Of a stretch of 64,000 nt of DNA, positions 37,738 to 63,289 are shown in pieces. Source of the DNA: Oikopleura dioica. Lineage: Eukaryota > Animalia > Chordata. The translations under genes were made by a program, and so were the position numbers. The stretch is taken from assembly GCA_907165135.1 (NCBI GenBank), contig OU015569.1, positions 3,844,001-3,908,000 on the forward strand. The letters run 5' to 3'. How positions within the stretch are numbered: position 1 is the stretch's first letter; each line of letters starts with the position of its first letter. The notes beneath the pieces were generated by a model. The model saw only the letters and a program-made list of their open reading frames with translations. It was not told where the DNA came from and did no database searches.

Positions 37738-40700
37738 TTAGACATCTGTTTCGCTTGGCAATTCTAGCCCTTGGTTTGTTCGGTTGTCCCTTATTCTTCC
37801 ACGAATAAACGGCTCTCCGTCAAGGTCGATTCCATCAGATAAAGAGGTATTTTCGGGTCCATTTTTGTTGAAGAAAGGAAACCAATTTGGACAAGAAGGC
37901 ATCTTCATTGTCGTATTATGAACTTGAGTATCCTTAAATGCGATTGAAACGTTGCCACTTATTCGAGTATGACCTGGTCGACTTCCGTTTCTCTATGATA
38001 GAAGTAATTGAAGTTCGAAACGATGACCGGCACTGGAAGTGCAATTCCCAAGACACCGGTGATAGCGCACAGGGCGCCAACGAATTTGCCCGCAACGGTT
38101 ACGGGACGCATGTCACCATAGCCAACAGTGGTCATCGTCACGACTGCCCACCAAAACGCATCAGGAATCGAATTAAACTGCGATTTTGGATCGACGGAAT
38201 CTACTTCAGCGAAGTAAACAGCCTGGAAATAAGTTCCGTAAATATTCTTTTTTTTAGTCTTACCGAAGAAAACAAAATAACTCCAATAAAAAGGAAGAAT
38301 ATTAGCAGACCAAGCTCTCTCATGGAGGCCTTGAGCGTTTGTCCAAGAATTTGGAGACCTTTTGAGTGCCTCGATAATTTGAAAATTCTAAAAACGCGGA
38401 CGAGCCTCACTACGCGCAGAATCGCCAGTGACATCGACTTGTTCGTGTCTTCTTCTTGTTCAAAGTTGTCCTTGTTCTTATCCATTTCTTTCGAGTCCTC
38501 GTCGCGGGTTGCCAGGGTGATGAAATAGGGCAAAATCGCCACGATATCGATGATATTCATGATATCCTTGACGAACATCTGGAAAACAAAATTTCAGCTA
38601 ATTTAAAAGCCATCTGACGGGACACTTTCAATAATCAAAACTGAAGACAAGTTTTGAGTTAAATGGAAAAATTGGACGAAAATGGAGCTTAGTCTTGAGA
38701 CGGATTACCAGGTTCGTGAGGACTAGGTTCGTGTGACTAGGTTCGTGGGTGCCATGTCGGAAAAAATGGTTCATGTGACTAGGTTCGTGGAATCTTGATT
38801 TTTATATGTATTTTTTGTATCTTCAGCATTTTAGGGCAGTAAGGGAAATGGGTTGATGAGTAGGTTCGTGTGACTAGGTTCGTGAAATTTTAAATAGAAA
38901 AAATTTTGGGGCAGTAAAGGAAACGGGTTGATGACTAGGTTCGTGGGACTAGGTTCGTGAAGACCTGGTTCGTGAAGACCAGGTGAGTTAAACTAGGTTC
39001 GTGAAATTTGGACTTTTATATGTTTATTTTATTTTTTGTTTGTTAGAGTTAGGCTTTAAATAAAACAATGTGAGAGCCTAGCGGCTTATACGGGGGGGGA
39101 AACTCATTTGGGATAAAATCCTTCATTTTGCTTGCTCAAAAACCCACGAACCTAGTCCCACGAACCCTTTCCATGTTCAATATTTTCTATTTAAAAACTC
39201 ACGAACCTAGTCCCACGAACCAAGTCATCAACCCTTTTCCCTTACTGCCCAAAAATTTTTACCATTTAAAAACTCTCGAACCTAGTCCCACGAACTTAGT
39301 CATCAACCCATTTCCCTTACTGACCCGAAATTCTTACTTTTTAAAAACTCTCGAACCAAGTCCCACGAACCAAGTCATCAACCCTTTTCCCTTACTGCCC
39401 AAAAATTTTTACCATTTAAAAACTCTCGAACCTAGTCCCACGAACCTAGTCATCAACCCATTTCCCTTACTGTCCCTAAATTTTATTTTTTAAAAAGTCA
39501 CGAACCTAGTCCCACGAACTTAGTCATCATGCCTTTTTCCTTACTGCCCCAAAATAAAGGCCGATTTCAATACTCTGGCAGAACCCACCACGAACCTAGT
39601 CCCACGAACCTAGTCCTCACGAACTTAGTCGTCATTCCCCTTAGTCTTTGAGATGCACCAAGGTTGACAAAACATCAAGATGAAAATTTTAACTTACCGC
39701 TTTGGATGGACAAGAGGCGAATCGGACCATCACTTCGAAGGAAAACCAGATGATACAGAATGTTTCGATCAACCAAAAAGGATTATCTGCAAGATTGCGT
39801 TTGTGACACTAAGATGGCAAATTATCTAGACGCCCGAGCACTTACGCAAGATTCTTTTCTAATTCAATCACTTCGCATTTACTGCTGTTGCTTTTAATAC
39901 GGCACTTACTGTTACGCCTGAGGTTAGTTTGTTGGTGAGGTTTGAAATAGTTTTTTCTACGGCCGCCTCTCTCGTGACGCGACTTGATTCTTTGCCAGAA
40001 GTGCCACAATTATCTCCGTCGCCCTTGTCTTCCCCGCAACAGCAACAGCATTTTGGGGGTTCTGGTACTTTCTCCATGTTGACTACAGAGTTGTTGATAT
40101 CGCGACACTAGAGATTCAATAAGATCAGAAAGTATTGCCGGAAGCTTACCTCGTACTGGTTGATCGTGGCGGAGAAGTCGGGCAGCGTTTCAAGACAAAA
40201 GGATACTATCGAGAGCAGAATCACGGAGACAGATATTACAGCAATGATACGAGCCCATAAAGAAGACTCTGGATATTCGAATAAGAGCCAAAGCTGCCTC
40301 TGCAGTTTTTGCACCGGCAGAGGCTAAATTACGCTGAGTCAAGCGAAACTTTACTGATTGTACCTTTGCTTCTTCTTTGATGTATCCTTCGTCTTCTTTA
40401 TACTTTTCCATTGCTGACTCGCCAAGGTCATAAAATTTGATCTCTTCCGTGAAAACGTCGATAGGCACATTTACAGGTCTCCTTAATCGACCTCCGGATT
40501 GATAATAATAAAGAATTGCATCGAAGGATGGGCGATTACGGTCGAAAAAGTACTCTTTTCTTTGAGGGTCCGAGGGTGGGTTCAACAACTGTCTTTTTTC
40601 GCAGAGCTAGAGCTAGAATTAGTTGAACCCGTAAAGCATAATAATCTTGTCTTCGTTCTGCGCACCCGAGAAGGCTTTTTGGAAAGTTTGATAGGGTCGA

Positions 40701-42730: not shown

Positions 42731-43204
42731 GGGAATTACGACTTAGTTCGTGAGGACTAGGTTCGTGGGACTAGGTTCGTGGTGGGTTCTGCCAGAGTAT
42801 TGAAATCGGGCTATATTTTAGGGCAGCAAGGGAAATGGGTTGATGACTAGGTTCGTGGGACTAGGTTCGTGAGTTTTTAAATGGTAAAAATTTTCGGGCA
42901 GTAAAGGAAATGGGTTGATGACTTGGTTCGTGGGACTAGGTTTGTGAGTTTTTAAAAAGTAAAGATTTAACAAGGAAAAGGTTCGTGGGACTAGGTTCGT
43001 GGGTTTTTGAACAAGCAAAATGTAGGACTTTATATCCCAAATGTCTAAAATAGTCTTCACGAACCTAGTCCCACGAACCTAGTCATCAACCCATTTCCCT
43101 TACTGCCCGAAAATGCTGAAGATACAAAAAAATACATATAAATGTTCAAATTCCACGAACCTAGTCCCACGAACCTAGTCCTCACGAACCTGGTCATCGG
43201 TCTC
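42731..43204 (+). mobile_element. Foldback-family copy B (474 bp)
   Basis: Ends GGGAATTACGAC...GGTCATCGGTCTC; 8-bp TSD CTACTTTT at 42723-42730 and 43205-43212. Confidence 0.88.
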
Positions 43205-48210: not shown

Positions 48211-48891
48211 GAGAATGACGACTAGGTTCGTGAGGACTAGGTTTGTGTGACTATATTCGAGGTGGGTTCTGCCAGAGTATTGAAATCGGCCTATATTTTT
48301 GGGCAATAAGGGAAATGGGTTGCTGACTAGGTTCGTGTGACTAGGTTCGTGAAATTTTAAATAGAAAAAATTGGGGCAGTAAGGGAAACGGGTTGATGAC
48401 AAGGTTCGTGTGACTATGTTCGTGAAATTTTAGATAGAAAAATTTTGGGGCAGTAAAGGAAACGGTGCTGACTAGGTTCGAGGGTTTTTGAACAAGCAAA
48501 ATGTAGGATTCTATATCCTAAATGAGTTCCCACCCCCAACCCCCTATAAGCCGCTAGGCTCTCACATTGTTAAAGCCTAACCCTAACATACAAAAATAAA
48601 ATAAACATATCAAAATCCAAATTCCACGAACCTTGTCTCACGAACTTGGTCTTCACGAACCTAGTCTTCACGAACCTAGTCCCACGAACCTTGTCTTCAC
48701 GAACCTAGTCTTCACGAACCTAGTCATCAACTCATTTTCCTTTCTGCCCCAAAATTTTTACTATTTAAAATTCCACGAACCTAGTCATCAAGGCATTTCC
48801 CTTACTGCCCCAAAATGTTGAAGATGCAAAAAATACATAAAAAAATCAAAATTTCACGAACCTAGTCCTCACGAACCTGGTCATCGGTCTC
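48211..48891 (+). mobile_element. Foldback-family copy C (681 bp)
   Basis: Ends GAGAATGACGAC...GGTCATCGGTCTC; flanks TTTTTTAT / TTTTTAT (7-8 bp TSD); central core shared with copy A. Confidence 0.85.
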
Positions 48892-51148: not shown

Positions 51149-54100
51149 TTAATTGAGGTTAAGGCACACGTCTCCGGGCAGGAGAGAAATCGAGGCAAAT
51201 AGGCGATTCTTCCACATTTCCGAGCTTTCCCCAGACAGTGCAGTGGACTCATCTCGAATGACATCCCACTTTTCAATGGGATATGTTTCGCGGTATCCAA
51301 AGAAGAGGTAAACTACAAATATGTCTTATGTCGGCAGTTGATATTTAGGTCTCTACCTGATCCGCCTATTCCTATAGATAGATGTTGCTTCCTAGGCATT
51401 TTAAGGCGATTAGCCATCAGCTGCCAGTAGCTGCTACCAGCGGCAAGGCGATAAACCCTGTCACTAGCACGTGATTCCATGGTGCCACCAAAGACGAGAA
51501 TGTCGCCGCCTACAACTGAAGCTGTTGAATCAGTTATTCCGCCATTGGGGAAGGTTGGACCCGCTCTCCATCTAAACACAATTATTGATTGCTTAGGATT
51601 TTTAGTCCGACTAACCTTCCATCTTGAAGGATTTCAACAGATGAACTTGTTCTTCTTGACCCCTCCGCACCACCAATCATGACCAATCCACGCTCAGGGA
51701 CGCTTACCATGGAGCCCTTGAGGTGGTTGTGGTCTAAGTCCGTTCGCCTGGTAAAGCGCTCGCCGTCGAAGCTGAATAATTACGGTTATTTGCGTTTTTC
51801 GTAGTTTGAGGGTGACCTGTCACATCGCTGGGGCTTGTGATACGCGGAGCAAATCCAGATTTCGCCATCGTGCTCAACGCACTGATGCTGCATGAGCTCG
51901 ATTTCGCTGCGAACAGATAGTGGATCACTTATGTGACAGTCACTGCCGCTTACTTTGCAGGGCTCGCGCAACTGACCCGGATACTATTTGAGATAAAAGC
52001 GTCCTTCAAAGAATGATCAAGCGAAAGATCAAGTCACCCGAAAAACAACGGTCAACTGTTTTTTCTTGGAATAAGATTATAACATGTTTTCTCAAATCGA
52101 AATGTATAAGTTGCGCTCGCTTTCCTTTGCGTACATCATATCGCGTGTAGTACCCTCCGATAACGAAGACCGCGTTGTCCAAGGCTGCTGTACAATGCAT
52201 CGCCAACTTTGGGAGCCTCAATGAGCTTCGCTGGAGTGCACTAAGATCGGTAGAGATGGAATTATCTGACGCGTCGAAGATAGTCATGTGTTGCATGAAA
52301 GATCCTCGGCCGCCAAGAAGCATAACTCGATCACCGAAGCAGTTATGCGTTCCACAAACTGCAACTTCTTCTGGCTTCCCATCGCAATCATTTTCACTCA
52401 TGCCCTCAAGAATCGCTGAACAAATTATTTAAATCAAACTCGACTGGGATTATGTTTTTACCTCTAGTTCTTTGAGTAATTCCAGTTCCACATGACTTGG
52501 TACAAGGCGACCAGGCACTCCATTCTCCCCAACAGCTGCAGGAACCGAGATTGCAGACTTTCTTCTGGACGTCGGATTTTTTGTGACGAGTCTAATTTTT
52601 GTTTTTATGATGATACTTTCTGTATATTTACCATGATGCCGTTTCCACAGGTAACGGAGCATTTTGACCAAGATGACCACTCATCGGCCGCAGACTCAAC
52701 ATTATCAAAGGGACCTGGCCGAGAAGCTCCAGCAAAGAATGGACCGCTGTGCCCGAGTGAGACCTAGACGTTTATTTTATGTAAGATTTGTAAGAGCTAC
52801 TCTCTAAATCACGAATAACAACCTTGCTGATCTGTGAACCGAGGTCGTCGACTCGCACGTCAATTCGTTTGATTTTTTCCTTCAAACTGTCGAAAGAGAA
52901 CTCGTTTGTCAAATTAAACAGCTTGTACGCATGTTCTATCATGGGCTACTATTTCGTCCGGACTTATTTAAAATGTAAATTTAGTGATTGAGAAATATTA
53001 AATGCTTGCGTCTCGGGGATTGTTTTTGTTATTTAATAAACTGCCCGATAATTCATTTATAGCCCAAAGCGATATTCTTCATCCTCGAGTCGAGCTTTCC
53101 AATCGGCTCCATCACATCGGGAATTAGTTTGTCGATTTCAAGCTTTATTCCATCGATTTGCGTCTAAAAGCTTTCATGAACCGATCCGTATGAAGTATAT
53201 TACTAACTCCAGAAGATGGAGTTATTTTGCATTCCGTTCCAAGACTTTCGGATTTGTCTGACTTACTTTTTCCTCAGTCTCGAGTCTCTCCATTTGCAGT
53301 TTAAGAGTAGTGACTGAATCCAGGACCTCGGCCAGATACTCCCGACTAGTGATGTTGCCTGTTAAATCATCTACTTCGTTGACAAGCTGGTCGATTTGAT
53401 ATTCCATTCGCTCGATTTTCTCTCCTAGATTGTGTCCTTGTTCTGTCTCAGACTGATCGTAATCATCGGAAATGGAATCGTCAAAGCCGTTACTCTTGGC
53501 ATAGCTCTCAATAAGTTTCAAAGTAGAGTCGATCTTCGAGTTGAACTCGCTTGTTAGCGCTGCGATCTGCTCGTTATTGATAATTTTAATCTCCTGCAGG
53601 TCCCGGCCGACTTCTGATTTGATCTGACAGAGTTAAACCAGTGCGTTGTGTTACTTATGTAAACAAGATCTTTAACCTTCCTGGTCAGCATTATTAAAAG
53701 CGTCTGCATTCGACTCTTTCAATAAATCCGTGAAATCGCTGGAGAGTTTGTCTAGTTGCGTCGATAATGTCGCCTGAACGTCATGGCGAAGGTCATGCAA
53801 ATCCTGCAAGAGCTGATCCATTCGGACGTATTCATCGAACTCAATAGCTTCGTCCGTTGCTGACATGGAGTTTCTGCTTGAACTTTGAAGAGCCGTGATT
53901 TGTTGCTCGTTTGTCTCCACACGCGTCGCAAGAACATCACGCATCTCAAAAAGATCAGAAATGGACTTTCCTATCTTGTCGAAGTCATCAACGATCGAGA
54001 TAAGTTTCGTCGTCCAGCTTCGAATCTCCCGGCGGAAATTTTCAAGTGAGTTTGTATTAGAAATAACTGAAAATAAATTTCAAGAAAAAAGTGATTCTTG

Positions 54101-57100
54101 GTCGGATATTTGACAAGGCAATTATCGGCCCTTTTTTACATTTTGACCTTCGAGGATATTAATATATATTACCTTTATCGTTCAATCTGTTAAATCTGTT
54201 TTGGCAGTCTTCACCTTGTGTAGTAACAAGGGCATTCAGTTCTGCAATTCGATCAGCGCGAGAATCCTCATTTCCTGATTCCAAGCGTATAACTGTCTGA
54301 TTGACGTGGAATAGTTGAGCAGAAATAGATTCGCGGAAGAGGTCAACGCCTCGGCGGAGGGTTTCGAACGAGGTCGAACACTGTCGGTTTAGTTTATCTA
54401 CATCGCCGTCGAGATTGTAAAGAAGTGTTCTCAAGTCGGTCGAGTTCACTTTTGCGGAACGTATGTCATCTTGAAGATCTCGAATAGTACTTTTCATAGC
54501 TTTTTAGACATAAATATTAGATTGTTGTTAAATAGAATCAAGCTATTTTATCAATTCATGTTTTTCGATTAAAAAGCCTGGCTTATGATTTGGTTGTTGG
54601 CAACTGAGTCGCTCCTTGTTGATTTCAAACTTGAAATTAGTTCTTCTAATTCTTTGAATTGACCGTTGTGAGATTCAACTTTAGAATTGAGGTCGATCGT
54701 CAATCGCGCCTGGCGATCAATTTCTGAAGAAAGCCTAGCAAATTCATCTTGCTCAGTATCGGCCAACTTAACGACGAAGTTATTGATTTCAATCAAAATC
54801 AAATAAATTGGTATACCTTGGCACGCAAGCTGTTTACAACAGTGACGAGACGAGCTTGTTGTTGAATAAGATCCTCGGTCTTCTCATGGACCATTTTCTT
54901 GAGCTGTGCGGAAGTCAGGTCGTTGCTTTCCTGCACTGCTCGTATTTTTTCCTCGAGTCGGGCAGTTCTTGACAGCTTCTCCGTGATTTCATCTATTTTC
55001 TCGTCCATCTCATCAGTGTCTTGTTCCAGTGCCAGTTGCGTCGCCACAATTTTCGTCTCCATAGCTGATCTGAGTTGAGCTAGTTTGAGCTCAACATTAA
55101 ATGTGGCTTAACAAGGGGCGACTTTTTTTAATCTTTGACGTGCAAAATGAGAACTTTGTTATTATTTGGTCCCTTGCCTAGATCTTTCATTTGCTTGTAA
55201 ATTGTCTCAAAGTCGTCGTACTTCCAGAATGTCTTATCAAGCGTATTTGACTTAATTAAACTGATCAAATTAGGCCAGTCGAATGCAGATACCTTTAAGT
55301 ACTCGACTTTCGCGGAAAGCTGTCCAATTTCGCTGGTGGTATGGGCTAACCTGTCCGACTGTTCTGAGGTAGTCTGCGTCAAAGTGTCTATTAGAGAGTT
55401 AATCTGCATGTGGGTTTTTTAGTCCAACAACGTTCGGCATCAACCCGAGAGCTCATGCTACTCTCAGTTTGTGAATATAAATGCATTTATCACGCTACGG
55501 ACTTTCTAACATTTATGAGAGCTAATGCATAATTAAACCCACTCCTTCAAAACTGCAGCATTCAGCCGTTCTTCGTAAGTTCCAGCTTGACGAGTGGCGA
55601 CTAAAGTGAGTGAGTCTAGATCAGACCGCAACGAATTCATCTTCGAAGAAACATCATTCTCACGGCGAACTGCATCCACGATAGAGCTCTGGACAGTTCG
55701 GGCTAGCGCAGTAGTGTTCTGCTTAATTTCATCATTTCGCTCCATGAAGATACTTTCTAGACGCGACAGTTCCTCCTGCAGATCTTGAATTTCCGTTTTG
55801 ATATTATCCGATAATATTGACGTTCTATTTGCAAAAATCTTCAGTAAAGTTTCGCTTCCCCGCTCATCATTAAGGTTCTTTTGTAGTTCGTCCATTTTAT
55901 CCTGCACTTTTTGTTCCAAACGGAAATCGGCAATGTCGCGAGCGTTTTTGAGTCCCTCGAATTCTTGACGCAGTCTTCGGACAGAAGAGTCAACGTTTTC
56001 TTTGAAGACGATTTCTAACGATTTCACTCGGTCGAGCTCTTGTTCGGCATCAGCGACAAGCTCTTTGAGCTTTCTGACTTCATTTTGTATCACCAGTTCC
56101 TTAGTTTCCAGTGTTTTCAATTTAGCATGCAGATATTCATGCACATGTGTTTTCGCAGATTTTGTAAATGCATCAAATGAGTTTTCCATTCTGAGCACCT
56201 TTTCAGTGAGCGCGCCCTGCTTGTCCGTTGTTTCCGAAAGCGCCAAGACTAGCTTTGAAATTCCTTCACTGAAATCATCCAGCTTTCCATTGAGTAATGC
56301 CTTGTTCATGGTAAGAGTTGCTAAAGTACCATTGAATCGGTTGAGCATCATTCGATGACCATCCATCATGTCGTCAACTCGAGCAAGTTTTTCCTGGTTG
56401 TCTTCTCGCGCTTCTAACTGCGCGTTTTCCAAGCTCAACACTCGAGTGCTCAATCGGCTGAAATCGCCGGACTGGTACATTTTTTGAAGTTCTGCTCTTG
56501 TACTTTCGGACACTGTTTTGAGCTGGTTCCTCACATCATTGTTGAGCATAATAAATTCGAGTTCTATTTTTTCACTTGCTGAGCAATGCTCGCCGACAGC
56601 TTCGATTCCGTTATTGACAGGGAGTTGGTCAGTTTTTTCAAGTCTGTCTCATACTCCGTCTTCAGCTCAAGAATCTTTTGCTTTGCATCAGAAAGAGACG
56701 AAAGGACCGTTGAATTCGACAAAGAAACAACTCGCTCGATCTTGGCCAGTTGTGCAACGAACTCCTCTCCATTTGTCATCGTTTCCATGCTCTTGTAAAG
56801 GGAGTTGAACTTTTCTTTCATCGCGTCAAGATCATTCTTATTCTGTCCTGCCACAAGTTTCAAGTTGCTCAAATTTTCATGAACTGTCATCTTGATATCA
56901 GCCAAATCGTTCGAAAGAGAAGTTGAATCTTCCGTCAATGCTTCTATTTTGACGCCCTGGTTTGTCAAATAATCATCATGACTGTCGATTTTCTTCCTCA
57001 TGTCTTCAGTCTTCGAAGCTAATAACAGGGCTCAAAATAAGTTCAAATAAAAAGTTTGTTTCTAAGTTTTTTCAAATCATACGATTGCTGTGTCAAGTCA

Positions 57101-60100
57101 GAAATCAATGAATCATTAATGAAGATTCACAACGTAGACATTTCTAACGACAAAATGCATGATTCTTGGACGGAAGCCATCCAAATAATGGGAATGACGA
57201 CTAAGTTCGTGAGGACTAGGTTCGTGGGACTAGGTTCGTGGTGGGTTCTGCCAGAGTATTTAAATCGGGCTATATCGGGCACGAACCTAGTCCCACGAAC
57301 CTAGTCATCAACCCATTTCCTTCAATGACCGAAAATGGTGAAGATACAAAAAAATACATATAAAAATCCAAATTCCACGAACCTAGTCACACGAACCTAG
57401 TCCTCACGAACCTGGTCATCCATCTCCAAATAATTAAATGAGTACATTCATAAATATTTAAGCCCTAGCAATCGAAGTGTAGTCTTCTATAATATCATCA
57501 AAAAGCTTTCGGTTTTCACCGGCTTTTTTCTGAATCGCCGTCACATCACCATCAAGCCGTTTTAAAATCTCAAAGTGCTTGGTCTTCCATTCGAGAATTT
57601 CTGGCTTTATGCGATTTTCAAGTATTGACAGTTTCAAGTCCACGTTTTGATCCGACTCGTCAACGGCCTTCTTCAATTTGTCGACGCGTTCCTTGACCCA
57701 CGTTGTCTCCCTAGAGTACGTCTCGTTCAGATATTTGACACTGCTCTCGATGGTGAAGATGTTCGTCAAGAAGTTTTCTGTTGAAGTTTCAAATTTACGC
57801 ATCAAATTTGCTTGCGATTCGGACACTTCTAAGAACCGCCGGTTGAAATTTGCCGTTTGTTCGCCAATGGCGACTTCCAGTGAATAGATTTTGTCTTTGT
57901 TGTTATCGACAGTTTTGAGTTTCAAAGACTGTGAGTTTTGAGCTGCTTTCACATCTTCAATCTTATGACCAAACTCAACGATAGATGCTGCGTTTTTCGA
58001 GTAGTTTTCGAGGTTGAGTTTTAGCTGCTTGTGATTCTCGAGGAGTTTGCCTTCCGTGTATTGAACACTCTTTTGCAGTTTTCCTAAGTCATTATGCATG
58101 TTGAGAATATCATCTTCAATGGAAGAAATACGTTGTTGCATGGCTTGATTTGTCTGCTTATATTTTCTAAAAACACCGGCGATCTTGTGAATCTGGTCCA
58201 AGAGTTTTCTAGTGTTATTGGGAGGAGACTCACGTCTCTTCCTTCTTCGGTAAGTTGGCGGATCACCCCTGATTGATAATTCATCCAAGTAATCTTGATC
58301 GTCCAGAACTGTGTAGCTGTCGTAGGCTGAATTTGAATTTTTCAGACGAATAAAAAACTAACTTACTAGAATCACTACTCATATTGTCGCTAGAGTCGTC
58401 AAGACTGGCAACTAACTGAGTCGCCAAAGTTTCAAATGAAGTCGACCAAACACCTTCAAGCTGTTGCAACCGTTCATGGAAAACATCCATATCTTCGGTC
58501 AGGTAAGCAATTTGTTGGATAATTTGTTTGTTCTCATCGATTATAATAGAGGAGTTCTTGGAGACATTTCCGTCAACGAGTTTCAACGCATCCTCGTTTT
58601 GTTTCGCCTGGATTCCAAGCATGAGAATATCTTCCTTGATTTTGTCGAGGGTCTCCACTAGCTCTTTTTCCTGCTTATCCTTCTCATTTTTGACCAGATC
58701 GATTTCCTGCCCAATGGAAGCAGTAGCCTTTTCCCAGTTACGAACCGAGGAAGTAATCTCAGATATTATTTCTTTATTTTGGATTGTCTGTGCTGAGTTC
58801 GCATCGACCTCATTTTCAATTTTGTGATTCTCTTCTCTTATTTGAGTAATTTTGTCTTCAATATCTTCAATTTTTTCGGGAAGATTTAAAAAGTCATTTT
58901 CGATAGACGTTATTCGCGAGTTGATTGACATGTGGAAGTTCCTATTGGCTTCCATCGAGTTCGAAAAGATAGCTTCATTATTGCGCGTTCTTTCCCCAAG
59001 TGCAGTCACAGTTGAGTTGAGCAGTGCTTCTCCGCGTAAAATGCTTTGAACTGAAAGCTCAATTTTCTCAATTTCTGCGACAAGAAGCTGTTCTAAGGCT
59101 GAATGTTTCCCCGCTTGATGATTGATAGGAACGATGAGTTTGTCGTGCAGAATTTGTGTTCGCTTCTCCAGCTCATCCGAGTTGACCTTGGTGAGTTTTT
59201 CAATCTCGTTCGACTTATTTGCAAGCTTGAAGACGAGCGCCAGGGTGCTCGTGGAGTCCTCTTGTATTTTTTTAATATCACTTGCTAAAAAGCCCAACTC
59301 TTTCGCGTGTTCAAGGCTTTTTCCTTCGGATGCTGCGAGTCTCTGTCCCTGCCTGTCCACTTTGTGAAGAAGCTGTCCGAATTTCTTGTCTACGTACTCG
59401 CTGTTATCTGTTTGCCCGCGTAATGTCTGCTCCATATTAGAGTTGATCTGCTCTTGTAACTGAGCCACTCGTCCTGATATAATATTCATACTGTTTTGAT
59501 GTGTTCTATCGACTTGGGTGACATTAGTCGCTAAATTTAGCACCCTTGATTCGACCGATCTGATGCTCTTGAATAATTGCTCGGACTGTGGTCGGAGATC
59601 GTCATCAAGTTCTGTGAGTTCGATTCGTAGATCTTCGTAATTGTCAGTCAGTTTCATAATGATTTGACGCTGCTGCATCATTTGCTTTCGCTCCATAGCA
59701 TGAGAATCAATCAGTCCGGAAACATCACTCTTCAGAGTAACCAAACTACTCTCTATTTGAGTAACCACTGATTTGCGCTCTCGTAAGTAATCCTCAAATT
59801 TAACACTTTTGCTGCTCATTCTATCAATACTTTCTTGGTGTCGATCATATAATTCCTTATTCATTTCCAGCTTTTCAGTTATTTCGGCCGTCTTCTGAGA
59901 AACTATCGAAAGCGCTTGCTCCGCTCGATTGGATGCATCCAAGAGTTTTGAATCCAAATTAGAAACTGATGTTTTCAGGCTTTCGTAGTCCGTCGTTTGC
60001 CGGCTATTTACTCTTGCCACGTGGTCTTCTATGACCGCTAGCTTGTCTTCTAGATTTTTCTGTCCGACTTGCTGCTGTAGAATTTTAGTTTCAAGCAGGG

Positions 60101-63100
60101 AGCGAAGCTCAGATGCTGTCATGCTTGTCGTATTGACCTTGCGCAAGTTCTCGGACAGAATGTTCATCTTGGTGGACATTTCCCCGCTCAGTGATTCCTT
60201 GAGATATTGAATTTTGCTGCTCAACGAGTGCGACATTTGTGTCTTCATGACATTAATCGAGTTGTTAAATGTTGTCAGGTCATCTTCAATCAAAAACGAC
60301 ATGTCAATCAGCTGACCTTCTAGTTTGTCCTGCTCTTCTTTGATATCGGCGACTTTTGCAGATAGGTTGGCTGTCGTACTTGCCGTCTTCTCAAGCTCGT
60401 CGATTCGTTCAGACATTATTTCAATCGAGTCCTCAGAAGAAGCTATTCCATCATCAATTTTACGCTCGATATCGATGAGTGACGACTTCAGCAACTCAGA
60501 AGCATGCTCATATTTCGATGCTCTTGAAGCCAAGTCGTCCGTCAAAAACGTTATTGTCTCTGTTTGAGTTTTTGCTTCTTGAACTGCTGATGATATCTTC
60601 GATATATCATTTCTTCGGGATATGAGCTGAGTTCTAAAAGCTTCTAGCTCAGACTCAATTCCATCGGCTTTGATCGATAAAGCGGACAAGTCAGACTCGC
60701 GGGCTTTATCCATCATCTCGTGGCGCACTTCTGAAATGTCTGCTTCCAAATGACTCCTTGTTGAATTCAGATTTTCTTCAAACGATCTGCTCTTTACATC
60801 TATTTCTTTGGCCAGATAAGTCTTTAACTCGTCTTCAACGTTAGATGATCTCCTCTCGGAATCATCAACACGCTGGATGATTTCTTCATTCGTTCTTGAA
60901 ATCTCATCCGTAATTTTAATAAGCTCATTGAACTTCTTTGAGATTGTACTTTCTGCAGGCCTACTTCGCTCGACTTCATCAAGGCGTTCCCCAAGTATGA
61001 TTTGTTGTTCCTCGCAAGAATCTATTCTGGGTGAGAATGCCTCTCTCATTTTATCCATCACTCCATTCAATTGAAGATCAAAACTTTGATCCTTCATCGA
61101 GTTAGATTCAGTTAAATTCTTCTTCAATTGGGCGAAATTTGAAGTTAAAACGTTCACAATGTCGTGATCTGTTTTCATCATTTTCTTGATTTCATCAACG
61201 TGATTATCCAGAGAATTAAACTTTTGAGACAAGTTAGTAAGCTCGAGTTGGTCAACTTGAGGAACGACAACAGGTTGTTTATTGACCAGTCTTTCTATAG
61301 TCTTCTGGGTCTTGTTAAATCGTTTTTGAATTGAAGAAGAAAGTAGCTCGTAATTGCGAATAGATTCAGACAGCGTTTCAATCATTGAAGTTGAATTATT
61401 TAAACCATTTTTCGAAGCGAGGATTTCTTTTTCTTGTTTTTCGAATTCCTTCGTCAAGTCTGATATTTGTTTGGCGGTTCCACTCATTGCCTGTTCAACG
61501 ACTGTAATTCGGAGATTCGATTTCATTGAGCGTTCGGTTGCATTTGAGCTTAATTCACGGAGCTGCTCCCCTGCCAATGTAAACGAATCTATTAGTTTAG
61601 CAATGGCAACATTGTGTTCCTGTATAATCCCCTTCTGATCTTCTATGCTCATGGCATTGAGATTGATGAGTAAAAGGTTCTCCCGCGCCATCGCAGTGAT
61701 ATTCTCCATTGATGGACCAAGTTCATCAGCTATTTCACTCTGGGAATCTTTTTCTTTCGGAAGTTGAGATTCATTATTTTCGACTTTTTCTGTTAGCATT
61801 TTCAGCTTCTCGTCTATATCGGTAAGGCGTCCTTCGACTTCTTCTTGAACATCTTGCGGTGGATTCATCAAAATCATCATTCTAACATAGTTTAGATCAG
61901 CTGCCAAACTGTCGGTTAGATTAGTAAATTGTCCAGCAAGAAATCTTAGATTTGCTGTCCACTTTGACTCCAACTGCTCGATTTCGGATGATGATGCATA
62001 AGTTTTTGTCACAAGCTCGATTTCCTCGACTTGCTCAGCTTCCAAAGCTTTTTCTTCCTTGGGCGTCTTTTGGTTCATTGAAATCAAGGAAGAGTTCAGC
62101 GAGTCGATACGATCGTTCACGCGCTCCAGCTCTAGTACGTCAAGTTCAATTGGTGCGGAGGGAATATCTGCTACAATTTCTTCGAAACGACCATCGATGT
62201 CGTTGACAAGCTTAGTAAGAGCCGTCCGGACGTCCTCGACGATAATATTATCTTCGTTTTCAAGAGATTGGAGTTTTGCACTTACATCGGGGGTCACAAA
62301 ATTCTAGTATTGTTTATTCATATATAATTTTATATCATTATAAAATTGGGCTAATTGAATGAAGATTGTGACCCTTTTCAAAAGAAATAAATTTCTCCGT
62401 ATTGACTTCCAGGTCACTTTGAATGTCCTCAACTCTCTGGGATGTGACACGTTGGTAGGCCATGACTTCTTGACGAGTTGCAGAGAGCTCCCTCAGCGTA
62501 CTTTGTTCCGCTTCAAGAGGTGCGATTCTCAATTCCAGCTGCTGAAGGCGTGTTCTAAAATCAGTACTGTCGGTTTCTCCTCCTTTCGATGGCTGTGAAT
62601 TCCTGTATTCAGATTCAGATTTTAACGCCCTTTATGATTGTTCCACAATAGAAAATCTACATCTTTCGTCAAACAGCTAAAATTTGACAGCTAAAATTAG
62701 AAGTCTGGCAAATTATGATGGCCTCTCTGTGTCAGTTGAAAGAGTCAGAATGAATTGACCTTTGATACAGATGCACAAGAGCGTTAATTGCTATGACCGT
62801 TTGCACTGATGACCGAAGACGTGACTAACGCCGAAAATGTAGAACAAATCCTGAGTTCACGCTTGAACTGATCGAGTTGAGGCTGAAGTGCGTTCTTGAT
62901 TCGTCGCCTTATCGAAGGATGTCCATGAATCTTCGGTGCGTAGTCCATTCGTATACTTCGAATTTCAGCTTCTAATCGTCTGTAATTATAATGCGCCGTT
63001 GATATCTTCGTATTCATAGTTGAAAGTTGAATGTTGATATCCCGGATTTGATTACTCTCTTTGCTCAAAATTACCGTTGTCGTTTAATGGTAAATTTAAG

Positions 63101-63289
63101 TACTTTAATCTTTTTATCTTTTATAGAAATAAATCATTTATAATTTTTAAAGCGGAAAGAAACAACTTCGAGCGCATTCCTTAATTCTGCGGCAGAGAAC
63201 GGCGTTTCAGCTGCAACGGCACTCGTATAATTTAAGATCCCTAACGTCAGCGCTACAATCCATTCTCGCCGCCGCTTTCGCGTCTGCAT
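51149..63289 (-). CDS. Giant predicted secreted protein: signal peptide, ~2,700-aa coiled coil, 2 TSP1 repeats, C-terminal kelch-like propeller (some junctions uncertain)
   Basis: ATG 63289 MQTRKRRREWIVALTLGILNYTSAVAA; ~3.9-kb heptad-rich exon 62303-58374; a chain of further coiled-coil exons; WSSWSKCSVTCGNG and WSAWSPCTKSCGTG..QRTR; GG-containing blades (VMLLGG, VFVIGG, LVMIGG, ILVFGG); stop TAA at 51149-51151. Confidence 0.7.
57190..57426 (+). mobile_element. Foldback-family copy D (237 bp, internally deleted) inside an intron of the giant gene
   Basis: Ends GGGAATGACGAC...GGTCATCCATCTC; 8-bp TSD CAAATAAT at 57182-57189 and 57427-57434. Confidence 0.88.

Follow-up and report, generated by a model that had tools for sequence, protein, structure and literature searches.

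Does the long run of coding sequence on the minus strand between positions 63289 and 51149 of a 64,000-nt stretch of the Oikopleura dioica genome (contig OU015569.1, positions 3,844,001 to 3,908,000 of assembly GCA_907165135.1; hereafter the window) encode one giant extracellular protein, or is it divided between two adjacent genes? On balance, we consider it probable that the locus is one gene for a protein of ~3,300 amino acids with secretory entry, an oligomeric rod, heads made of TSP1 repeats and a kelch propeller, and a structural or adhesive role outside the cell. The single-gene explanation is favored because all exons can be modeled in frame, because the sixth exon behaves as an internal exon, because no coding sequence is found further upstream, and because homologues carry the same C-terminal module. 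All exon coordinates below refer to the minus strand of the window.

Twenty-two exons can be joined in one reading frame

Between 63358 and 51152, the minus strand carries a chain of stop-free segments with a uniform, A-rich coding composition, including a single open stretch of 1,340 codons (62303-58284). The initial annotation had linked about ten open reading frames by short introns, which is an undercount: our working model joins 22 exons in frame over 9,948 nt and 3,315 codons, ending at TAA 51151-51149. Several alternative junctions also keep the frame, giving a length range of about 3,260-3,330 amino acids. The parts that had been recognized along this frame, namely a signal-peptide-like exon at 63289, a long rod poor in Pro and Cys, two TSP1 repeats, and a GG-blade propeller ending at 51149, are all borne out by the analyses described below. 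Homology searches were run exon by exon or with database homologues, and the joined model was used for local statistics only.

The introns of the working model comprise 17 GT-AG, three GC-AG, and one GA-AG; 20 of them measure 40-200 nt and one measures 501 nt. Non-canonical introns make up 11% of all introns in O. dioica, where the median intron length is 49 nt (PMC8008620), and GA-AG introns are frequent (PMC7072748). The gene would contain at least two of the latter, one at donor 62850, which is used by the public gene model, and one at donor 52124, placed there because of the homologue alignment and the point at which two O. dioica fragments (P0016 and P0017) diverge.

In the 5' part of the model, exon 1 (63167-63289) begins with ATG 63289 and ends at a weak donor, either GTTGTT at 63166 or GTTTCT at 63163. 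The rod begins in exon 2 (62830-63056; donor GTTAGT 62829) and continues through exon 3 (62407-62629) into exon 4 (58367-62303), which contributes 3,937 nt, or ~1,312 codons, of rod and ends at a GTAAGT donor (58366). At its largest open exon (58284-62303), the locus shares 99% identity with the NCBI protein Oidioi.mRNA.OKI2018_I69.XSR.g14367.t1 (P0001, 1,659 amino acids). This public model spans only 62948-57461 and ends at TAA 57460-57458. It starts at an internal Met (62948), so that exon 1 is not part of it, and its splice choices (the GA-AG donor 62850 in exon 2, then the earlier donor GTACGC 62501 in exon 3 with acceptor 62252) keep the frame. If the single-gene explanation holds, g14367 is a truncated piece of a larger gene.

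The junction between exons 5 and 6 decides between one gene and two

That the frame forms one gene is likely and not proven, owing to the annotation split at 57458 and the donor of exon 5. The initial annotation had flagged two places where independent genes might abut: the one at 57019-57465 is a genuine uncertainty, while the one at ~53000 is merely a junction with weak splice sites. In the working model, exon 5 (57520-58326) and exon 6 (56576-57018) are separated by a 501-nt intron (57019-57519), and the 3' end of exon 5 has several candidates: a G↓GTGAAA donor at 57519, a possible GG donor at 57465, and the annotated stop TAA 57460-57458. The junction was tested with contigs of a related lineage (L007/L008 for exon 6 and L011 for the end of exon 5), which shares ~75% protein identity with the window.

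The TAG acceptor at 57019 is conserved in L007/L008, and similarity collapses upstream of it. The first 44 codons of exon 6 contain no indel and differ from the relative at 10 first, 5 second, and 27 third codon positions; because differences favor third positions from the first codon onwards, the start of exon 6 is translated. A potential start codon in the window (ATG 57001) reads ATT in the relative, which has no ATG before codon 43, whose first ATG is out of frame, and which carries an in-frame TAA two codons before the acceptor. The conserved acceptor, the coding-type divergence, the lack of an ATG, and the upstream TAA together show exon 6 to be coding and internal, and not a first exon.

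Several observations weigh against a single secreted protein. The only canonical phase-1 donor of exon 5 (G↓GTGAAA, 57519) is not conserved in L011, the relative has an in-frame stop three codons past the conserved tail of exon 5, and the RNA-seq-hinted public annotation closes the gene at TAA 57458. At the other end, the splice sites between exons 1 and 2 are weak and exon 1 is missing from g14367. N-glycosylation sequons are not enriched in the joined model (32 vs 28.8 expected). A two-copy fold prediction of a 161-residue rod segment (60252-60734) scored 0.00, which is evidence neither for nor against self-association.

The junction data bear most directly on a two-gene arrangement, with a coiled-coil-only protein ending at TAA 57458 and a downstream gene of ~1,500 amino acids for a coiled coil, two TSP1 repeats, and the kelch head, which would begin either with a short, unrecognized 5' exon or through trans-splicing to acceptor 57019. 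We regard this as unlikely, though a serious contender. It would explain why the public AUGUSTUS model, like other OKI2018 gene models built with RNA-seq hints (PMC8008620), halts at 57458, why the canonical donor is not conserved, and why a stop lies within 0-3 codons of the conserved tail in both lineages. The gap is also long in both (441 nt between annotated stop and acceptor 57019 in the window, >300 nt in the relative) compared with the median intron of 49 nt. However, two genes are hard to reconcile with an exon 6 that is translated from its first codon in a lineage where no ATG precedes codon 43 and the first ATG is out of frame. Nor does the gap (57019-57519) offer a credible first exon with a signal peptide, as its candidates outside the transposon it contains encode just 1-26 residues, whereas a protein with TSP1 repeats requires a signal peptide.

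A plain gene end would, moreover, leave the conservation of synonymous sites in the tail of exon 5 unexplained. Only 2/16 third positions differ between the window and L011 in the last 16 codons of the exon, against 72/120 just upstream. Conservation extends for another ~12 nt, so that ~60 nt (57450-57510) are nearly identical between lineages that are otherwise ~60% diverged synonymously. This suggests an element acting at the RNA level, either a regulated non-canonical donor and splicing control or 3'-end formation. Only one G-initial phase-1 site, A↓GGGCT at 57465, is common to both lineages, and its use would create a GG-AG intron. Such introns in O. dioica were reportedly described by Denoeud and colleagues in 2010. 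The heptad register across the junction is uninformative, with three donor choices fitting about equally well. A short isoform through an alternative 3' end at exon 5 is possible. We infer the exact splice from exon 5 to exon 6, and consider it quite likely that one gene crosses the disputed gap.

The gap itself holds a 225-bp foldback miniature inverted-repeat transposable element (57196-57420), which consists of tandem copies of a 13-14-nt unit, CACGAACCTAGTC, and its complement. Copies of the same type occur at about 38720-39630, 42755-43195, and 48220-48882, with 57 matches in the window compared to 0.04 expected. Separately, a motif of ~25 nt, AACCCTnGCGGGnAAAGTGACC, recurs at two sites in the related lineage's version of the gene (L007:560-600 and L011:1150-1190), each in a different intron or gap, and may represent another small repeat family.

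Two TSP1 repeats and a six-bladed kelch head form the C-terminus

The C-terminal module begins in exon 16 (52632-52763), which carries the end of the rod and the N-terminal half of TSP1 repeat 1 (WSSWSKCSVTCG; TSP_1 E 6.8e-8). Exon 17 (52462-52591) adds the short C-terminal half of this repeat and the N-terminal half of repeat 2 (WGEWSAWSPCTKSCGTG; E 1.6e-7), and exon 18 (52125-52415) supplies the C-terminal half of repeat 2. With a cut-off of 21.6 bits, the TSP_1 model (PF00090) matches the open exons 52608-52763 and 52409-52591, which hold the two N-terminal halves, at 33.0 and 31.8 bits. Both repeats keep the WxxW and CxxS/TCG motifs, which in TSP1 repeats are targets of modification in the endoplasmic reticulum, and each is interrupted by an intron. 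Aligned to the metagenomic homologue P0003, which has two complete TSP1 repeats (TSP_1 E 7.8e-20), repeat 1 is a short variant with two Cys fewer than its counterpart, and repeat 2 runs on into exon 18 with three more Cys.

The head follows directly, with blades 1-2 in exon 18, which would end at the GA-AG donor 52124. By homology, blade 3 lies in exon 19 (51817-51952), blade 4 in exon 20 (51616-51771), and blade 6 in exon 22 (51149-51312), together with the stop codon TAA 51151-51149; blade 5 in exon 21 (51357-51571) is identified both by homology and by a Kelch_1 match of 21.4 bits on the open exon 51316-51633 (cut-off 20.1). The six GG blades and the splice junctions of exons 18-22 were fixed by tblastn of the homologues P0018 and P0003 against the window, as a MAFFT alignment of exon fragments had put the blades out of register. 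Identity to P0018 is 36-39% across all blades. P0018 itself scores 55.6 bits with Kelch_1 (E 3.6e-15, three stretches), exceeds the cut-offs of Kelch_6, Kelch_2, and Kelch_4, and matches solved kelch domains by sequence (the designed SAKe6 at 2.5e-13, KLHL2/3 at ~1e-8, and Keap1).

An AlphaFold2 model, built for residues 36-314 of the homologue P0018 and not for the joined window exons, reached a predicted local distance difference test (pLDDT) score of 84 and a predicted template-modeling (pTM) score of 0.85 from 19 sequences. With Foldseek, it aligned to the kelch domains of Keap1, KLHL17, KLHL3, and PfK13 (TM 0.86-0.88, E ~1e-17, root-mean-square deviation ~2.2 Å). Generic kelch proteins had been added to the alignment, which biases the model towards the kelch fold; the sequence evidence is independent of it. 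An earlier model from a seven-sequence family alignment (pLDDT 37.6) was discarded. Sequence matches and homologue model together support a six-bladed kelch-type propeller. Six Cys are conserved in the head among the window, P0018, and P0003, and would fit disulfides of an extracellular domain. Kelch propellers are mostly intracellular, as had been pointed out, with extracellular exceptions such as attractin/MEGF8 and galactose oxidase. Searching the ESM Atlas with P0018 returned generic kelch clusters only, all below 0.9, and the Beta-prop_ATRN-LZTR1 match stayed far under its cut-off (23 vs 50 bits).

A heptad-patterned rod of almost 2,900 residues

The rod covers residues ~27-2911 (2,885 amino acids) and contains 4 Cys (0.1%), 29 Pro (1.0%), and 2.3% Gly, with a net charge of about -131. 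Its hydrophobic periodicity peaks at 3.5-3.6 residues, with windowed Fourier power at z = 20-25 relative to shuffled sequences, and a strong a/d pattern is seen in 43% of 28-residue windows compared with 4.5% in shuffles. The heptad signal is uniform along the rod and falls in the head. Under a simple register model, register-constant runs extend over 100-160 residues and are split mostly by shifts of +1 and +4 (skips and stutters). The register switches ~35 times, and a few non-heptad linkers are interspersed. The earlier estimate of a ~400-nm rod presumes an unbroken coiled coil, against these register changes and linkers. L/I/V/F/M occupy 60-65% of the a and d positions, with similar mixes of L, I, and V at both, which hints at a trimer or higher oligomer over a dimer.

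We found no internal repeats in the rod (no tile pairs at E ≤ 1e-3; exons without tandem repeats), and Pfam searches of ten rod segments (63358-54572) gave only sub-threshold, coiled-coil-like matches. The main non-heptad linker lies in exon 5 near residue 1530 (58200-58240), ahead of further rod sequence, and contains PPTYRRRKRRESPP with a furin-like multibasic RRRKRR site flanked by proline. It resembles a proprotein-convertase site, and cleavage there could split the protein in two.

Downstream of the disputed gap, the rod runs on from exon 6 through exon 7 (55539-56522, 328 codons), exon 8 (55178-55403), exon 9 (54817-55106), exon 10 (54583-54766), exon 11 (54173-54499), exon 12 (53677-54066), exon 13 (53267-53613), exon 14 (53064-53163), and exon 15 (52820-52935). 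Weak GC donors occur at three junctions of exons 8-15; alternatives exist, all of them in frame. In both halves of the rod, divergence from the related lineage is biased to third codon positions, and conservation is 93% for the head exon vs ~75% for the rod. By these sequence comparisons, the locus is a functional gene under purifying selection, with the head more constrained than the rod.

Relatives of the head are few, and the full architecture appears to be new

Among 1.84 billion representative proteins, the head exon has only a handful of true relatives. Four of them (P0002 and P0015-17) are fragments of O. dioica-like sequence with 93% identity, and three more distant ones stem from marine metagenomes or metatranscriptomes (P0003 with 45% identity, P0004/P0018 with 36%, and P0009). 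P0003 combines a coiled-coil end, both TSP1 repeats, and the first three kelch blades in one open reading frame, and in the contig of P0018 (L006, Tara Oceans ERR1719394, 1,067 nt) two TSP1 repeats, the propeller, and a stop codon follow each other without interruption. We take ERR1719394 to be a metatranscriptome run. The TSP1-TSP1-kelch module thus appears to be expressed and to end as it does in the window.

A protein combining the head exon with a long N-terminal part was not found among the 1.84 billion representatives. Searches with the largest rod exon matched no protein of 737-2,345 amino acids besides P0001, exon 5 had no homologue in the range of 164-523 amino acids, and a first metagenome scan with exon 6 gave no match. 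The statement that this architecture belongs to no named family therefore agrees with the database searches, which returned no protein with the whole architecture. It appears to be absent from the public protein sets searched, and the locus is only half annotated. The novelty lies in a new combination of known modules, and the related sequences are restricted to what look like appendicularians.

Predicted secretory entry and proposed role

The exon 1 ATG (63289) is the first ATG after an in-frame stop, which sits 23 codons upstream. On inspection, the encoded peptide shows a basic RKRRR cluster, a 10-residue hydrophobic run (WIVALTLGIL), and an AVA↓AE motif, features that match a cleavable signal peptide and make the exon signal-peptide-like. 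Secretion and the exact splice from exon 1 to exon 2 are accordingly put forward as predictions.

Taken together, these features suggest the following mechanism. The protein would enter the secretory pathway by an N-terminal signal peptide or signal anchor, and ~2,900 residues of non-repetitive, acidic, heptad-patterned α-helix would pair with identical chains. The resulting parallel oligomer could form a segmented coiled-coil rod or fiber of up to a few hundred nm, bearing two TSP1 repeats and a six-bladed, Cys-bearing kelch propeller at the C-terminal end of each chain. The oligomer might in this way display clustered propeller heads as binding modules, with matrix, glycan, or cell surface as candidate ligands. 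Oligomer formation and a structural or adhesive extracellular role are what we infer from the domain content.

A more specific proposal is a component of the filter house, an unrecognized oikosin made by the oikoplastic epithelium, which we regard as improbable. The protein is predicted to be secreted and fibrous and is apparently restricted to appendicularians, and house proteins are largely lineage-specific (PMC3390340), in keeping with such a role. However, a text search of that oikosin proteome paper finds no mention of kelch or of a coiled coil, oik23, the one oikosin there with TSP1, differs in architecture by its CCP domains (PMC3390340), and an abundant protein of 3,300 amino acids should yield peptides if the database searched included its gene models.

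Equally doubtful is the idea that the same single gene encodes a type II cell-surface stalk with an uncleaved signal anchor, which would keep its kelch heads at a distance from the membrane and whose distal half could be released at the RRRKRR site: the strongly basic RKRRR preceding an 18-19-residue, mostly apolar stretch and the proline-flanked, furin-like site within a non-heptad linker would suit it, but only 10 residues form a truly hydrophobic core, and a good AxA motif for cleavage comes after it.

Returning to the single secreted protein, its coding sequence of ~10 kb, incomplete in public annotation, would rank it with the largest that this very compact chordate genome encodes. TSP1 repeats would here be combined with a giant coiled coil and with a kelch head outside the cell, an arrangement not seen elsewhere. 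The protein would be a candidate for long fibers in larvacean extracellular structures and a natural case of an extracellular kelch propeller on an oligomeric stalk, and the disputed junction of exons 5 and 6 is a clear case on which non-canonical splicing in O. dioica can be tested. A bolder version, for which we see a limited chance, is a larvacean-restricted, homo-oligomeric rod of ~2,900 residues (~400 nm at most) with disulfide-bonded, lectin-like or matrix-binding kelch heads, in a larvacean-specific structure such as the house and with an unusual, deeply conserved non-canonical splice; if true, no longer extracellular coiled coil would be known from animals.

Genomic context

The locus lies in the X-specific region of Okinawan-type O. 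dioica. Two large exons are 98.6-99.0% identical to the published OKI2018_I69 genome (tblastn), as for a near but not identical individual. The head segment 52009-52428 (140 amino acids) is single-copy in the genome, an assembly of 64.3 Mb in 19 contigs. Upstream on the same (minus) strand follow exons of a Rab-like GTPase (64562-65175) and then a β-tubulin gene (65834-66987), so the 5' end of the giant gene should fall between 63289 and ~64160. The Rab-like small GTPase carries GEAGVGK and NKTDL motifs. On the 3' side, the stop codon is followed by AT-rich sequence only.

Comparison with known systems

Among solved structures, the head is closest in fold and in sequence to BTB-kelch proteins (Keap1, KLHL2/3/12/17, and Plasmodium K13). 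These are cytosolic ubiquitin-ligase adaptors with BTB/BACK domains and 14-20% identity to the head, whereas the protein described here has six conserved head Cys, a secretory context, and no BTB that we could find: neither BTB nor BACK matched in ten rod segments (63358-54572), the last rod exon, or the C-terminal exons, a scan that leaves out four segments at 54503-53056. Attractin and MEGF8, also animal proteins with an extracellular kelch-type propeller, are membrane-anchored, lack a long coiled coil, and contain CUB, EGF, PSI, C-type lectin, and laminin-EGF domains besides the propeller. The laminin long arm and the EMILIN/multimerin proteins are matrix proteins on long coiled-coil rods with globular ends; their rods, heterotrimeric in the case of laminin, reach ~600 amino acids at most and bear other heads (LG, gC1q).

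Thrombospondins and COMP share secretion, a coiled-coil oligomerizer, TSP1 repeats, and a globular C-terminal head in a multi-headed 'bouquet'. Their coiled coil measures ~40 amino acids, and they possess EGF repeats, type 3 repeats, and an L-lectin-like C-terminal domain; Pfam matched no EGF repeats, type 3 repeats, or TSP C-terminal domain on the exons or on P0003/P0018. Olfactomedin-domain proteins (myocilin, noelins, gliomedin) resemble the present protein in being extracellular and in having a signal peptide, an oligomerizing N-terminal coiled coil, and a C-terminal β-propeller. Theirs is a five-bladed OLF head on a coiled coil of about 100-200 amino acids, in contrast to a six-bladed kelch head, a rod ~15 times longer, and two TSP1 repeats in between, and the OLF domain (PF02191) had no Pfam match on the TSP1/head exons or on P0003/P0018. 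By analogy, the locus would therefore encode the 'bouquet' design of olfactomedin proteins and thrombospondins at a far larger scale, placed outside both families by the domain tests.

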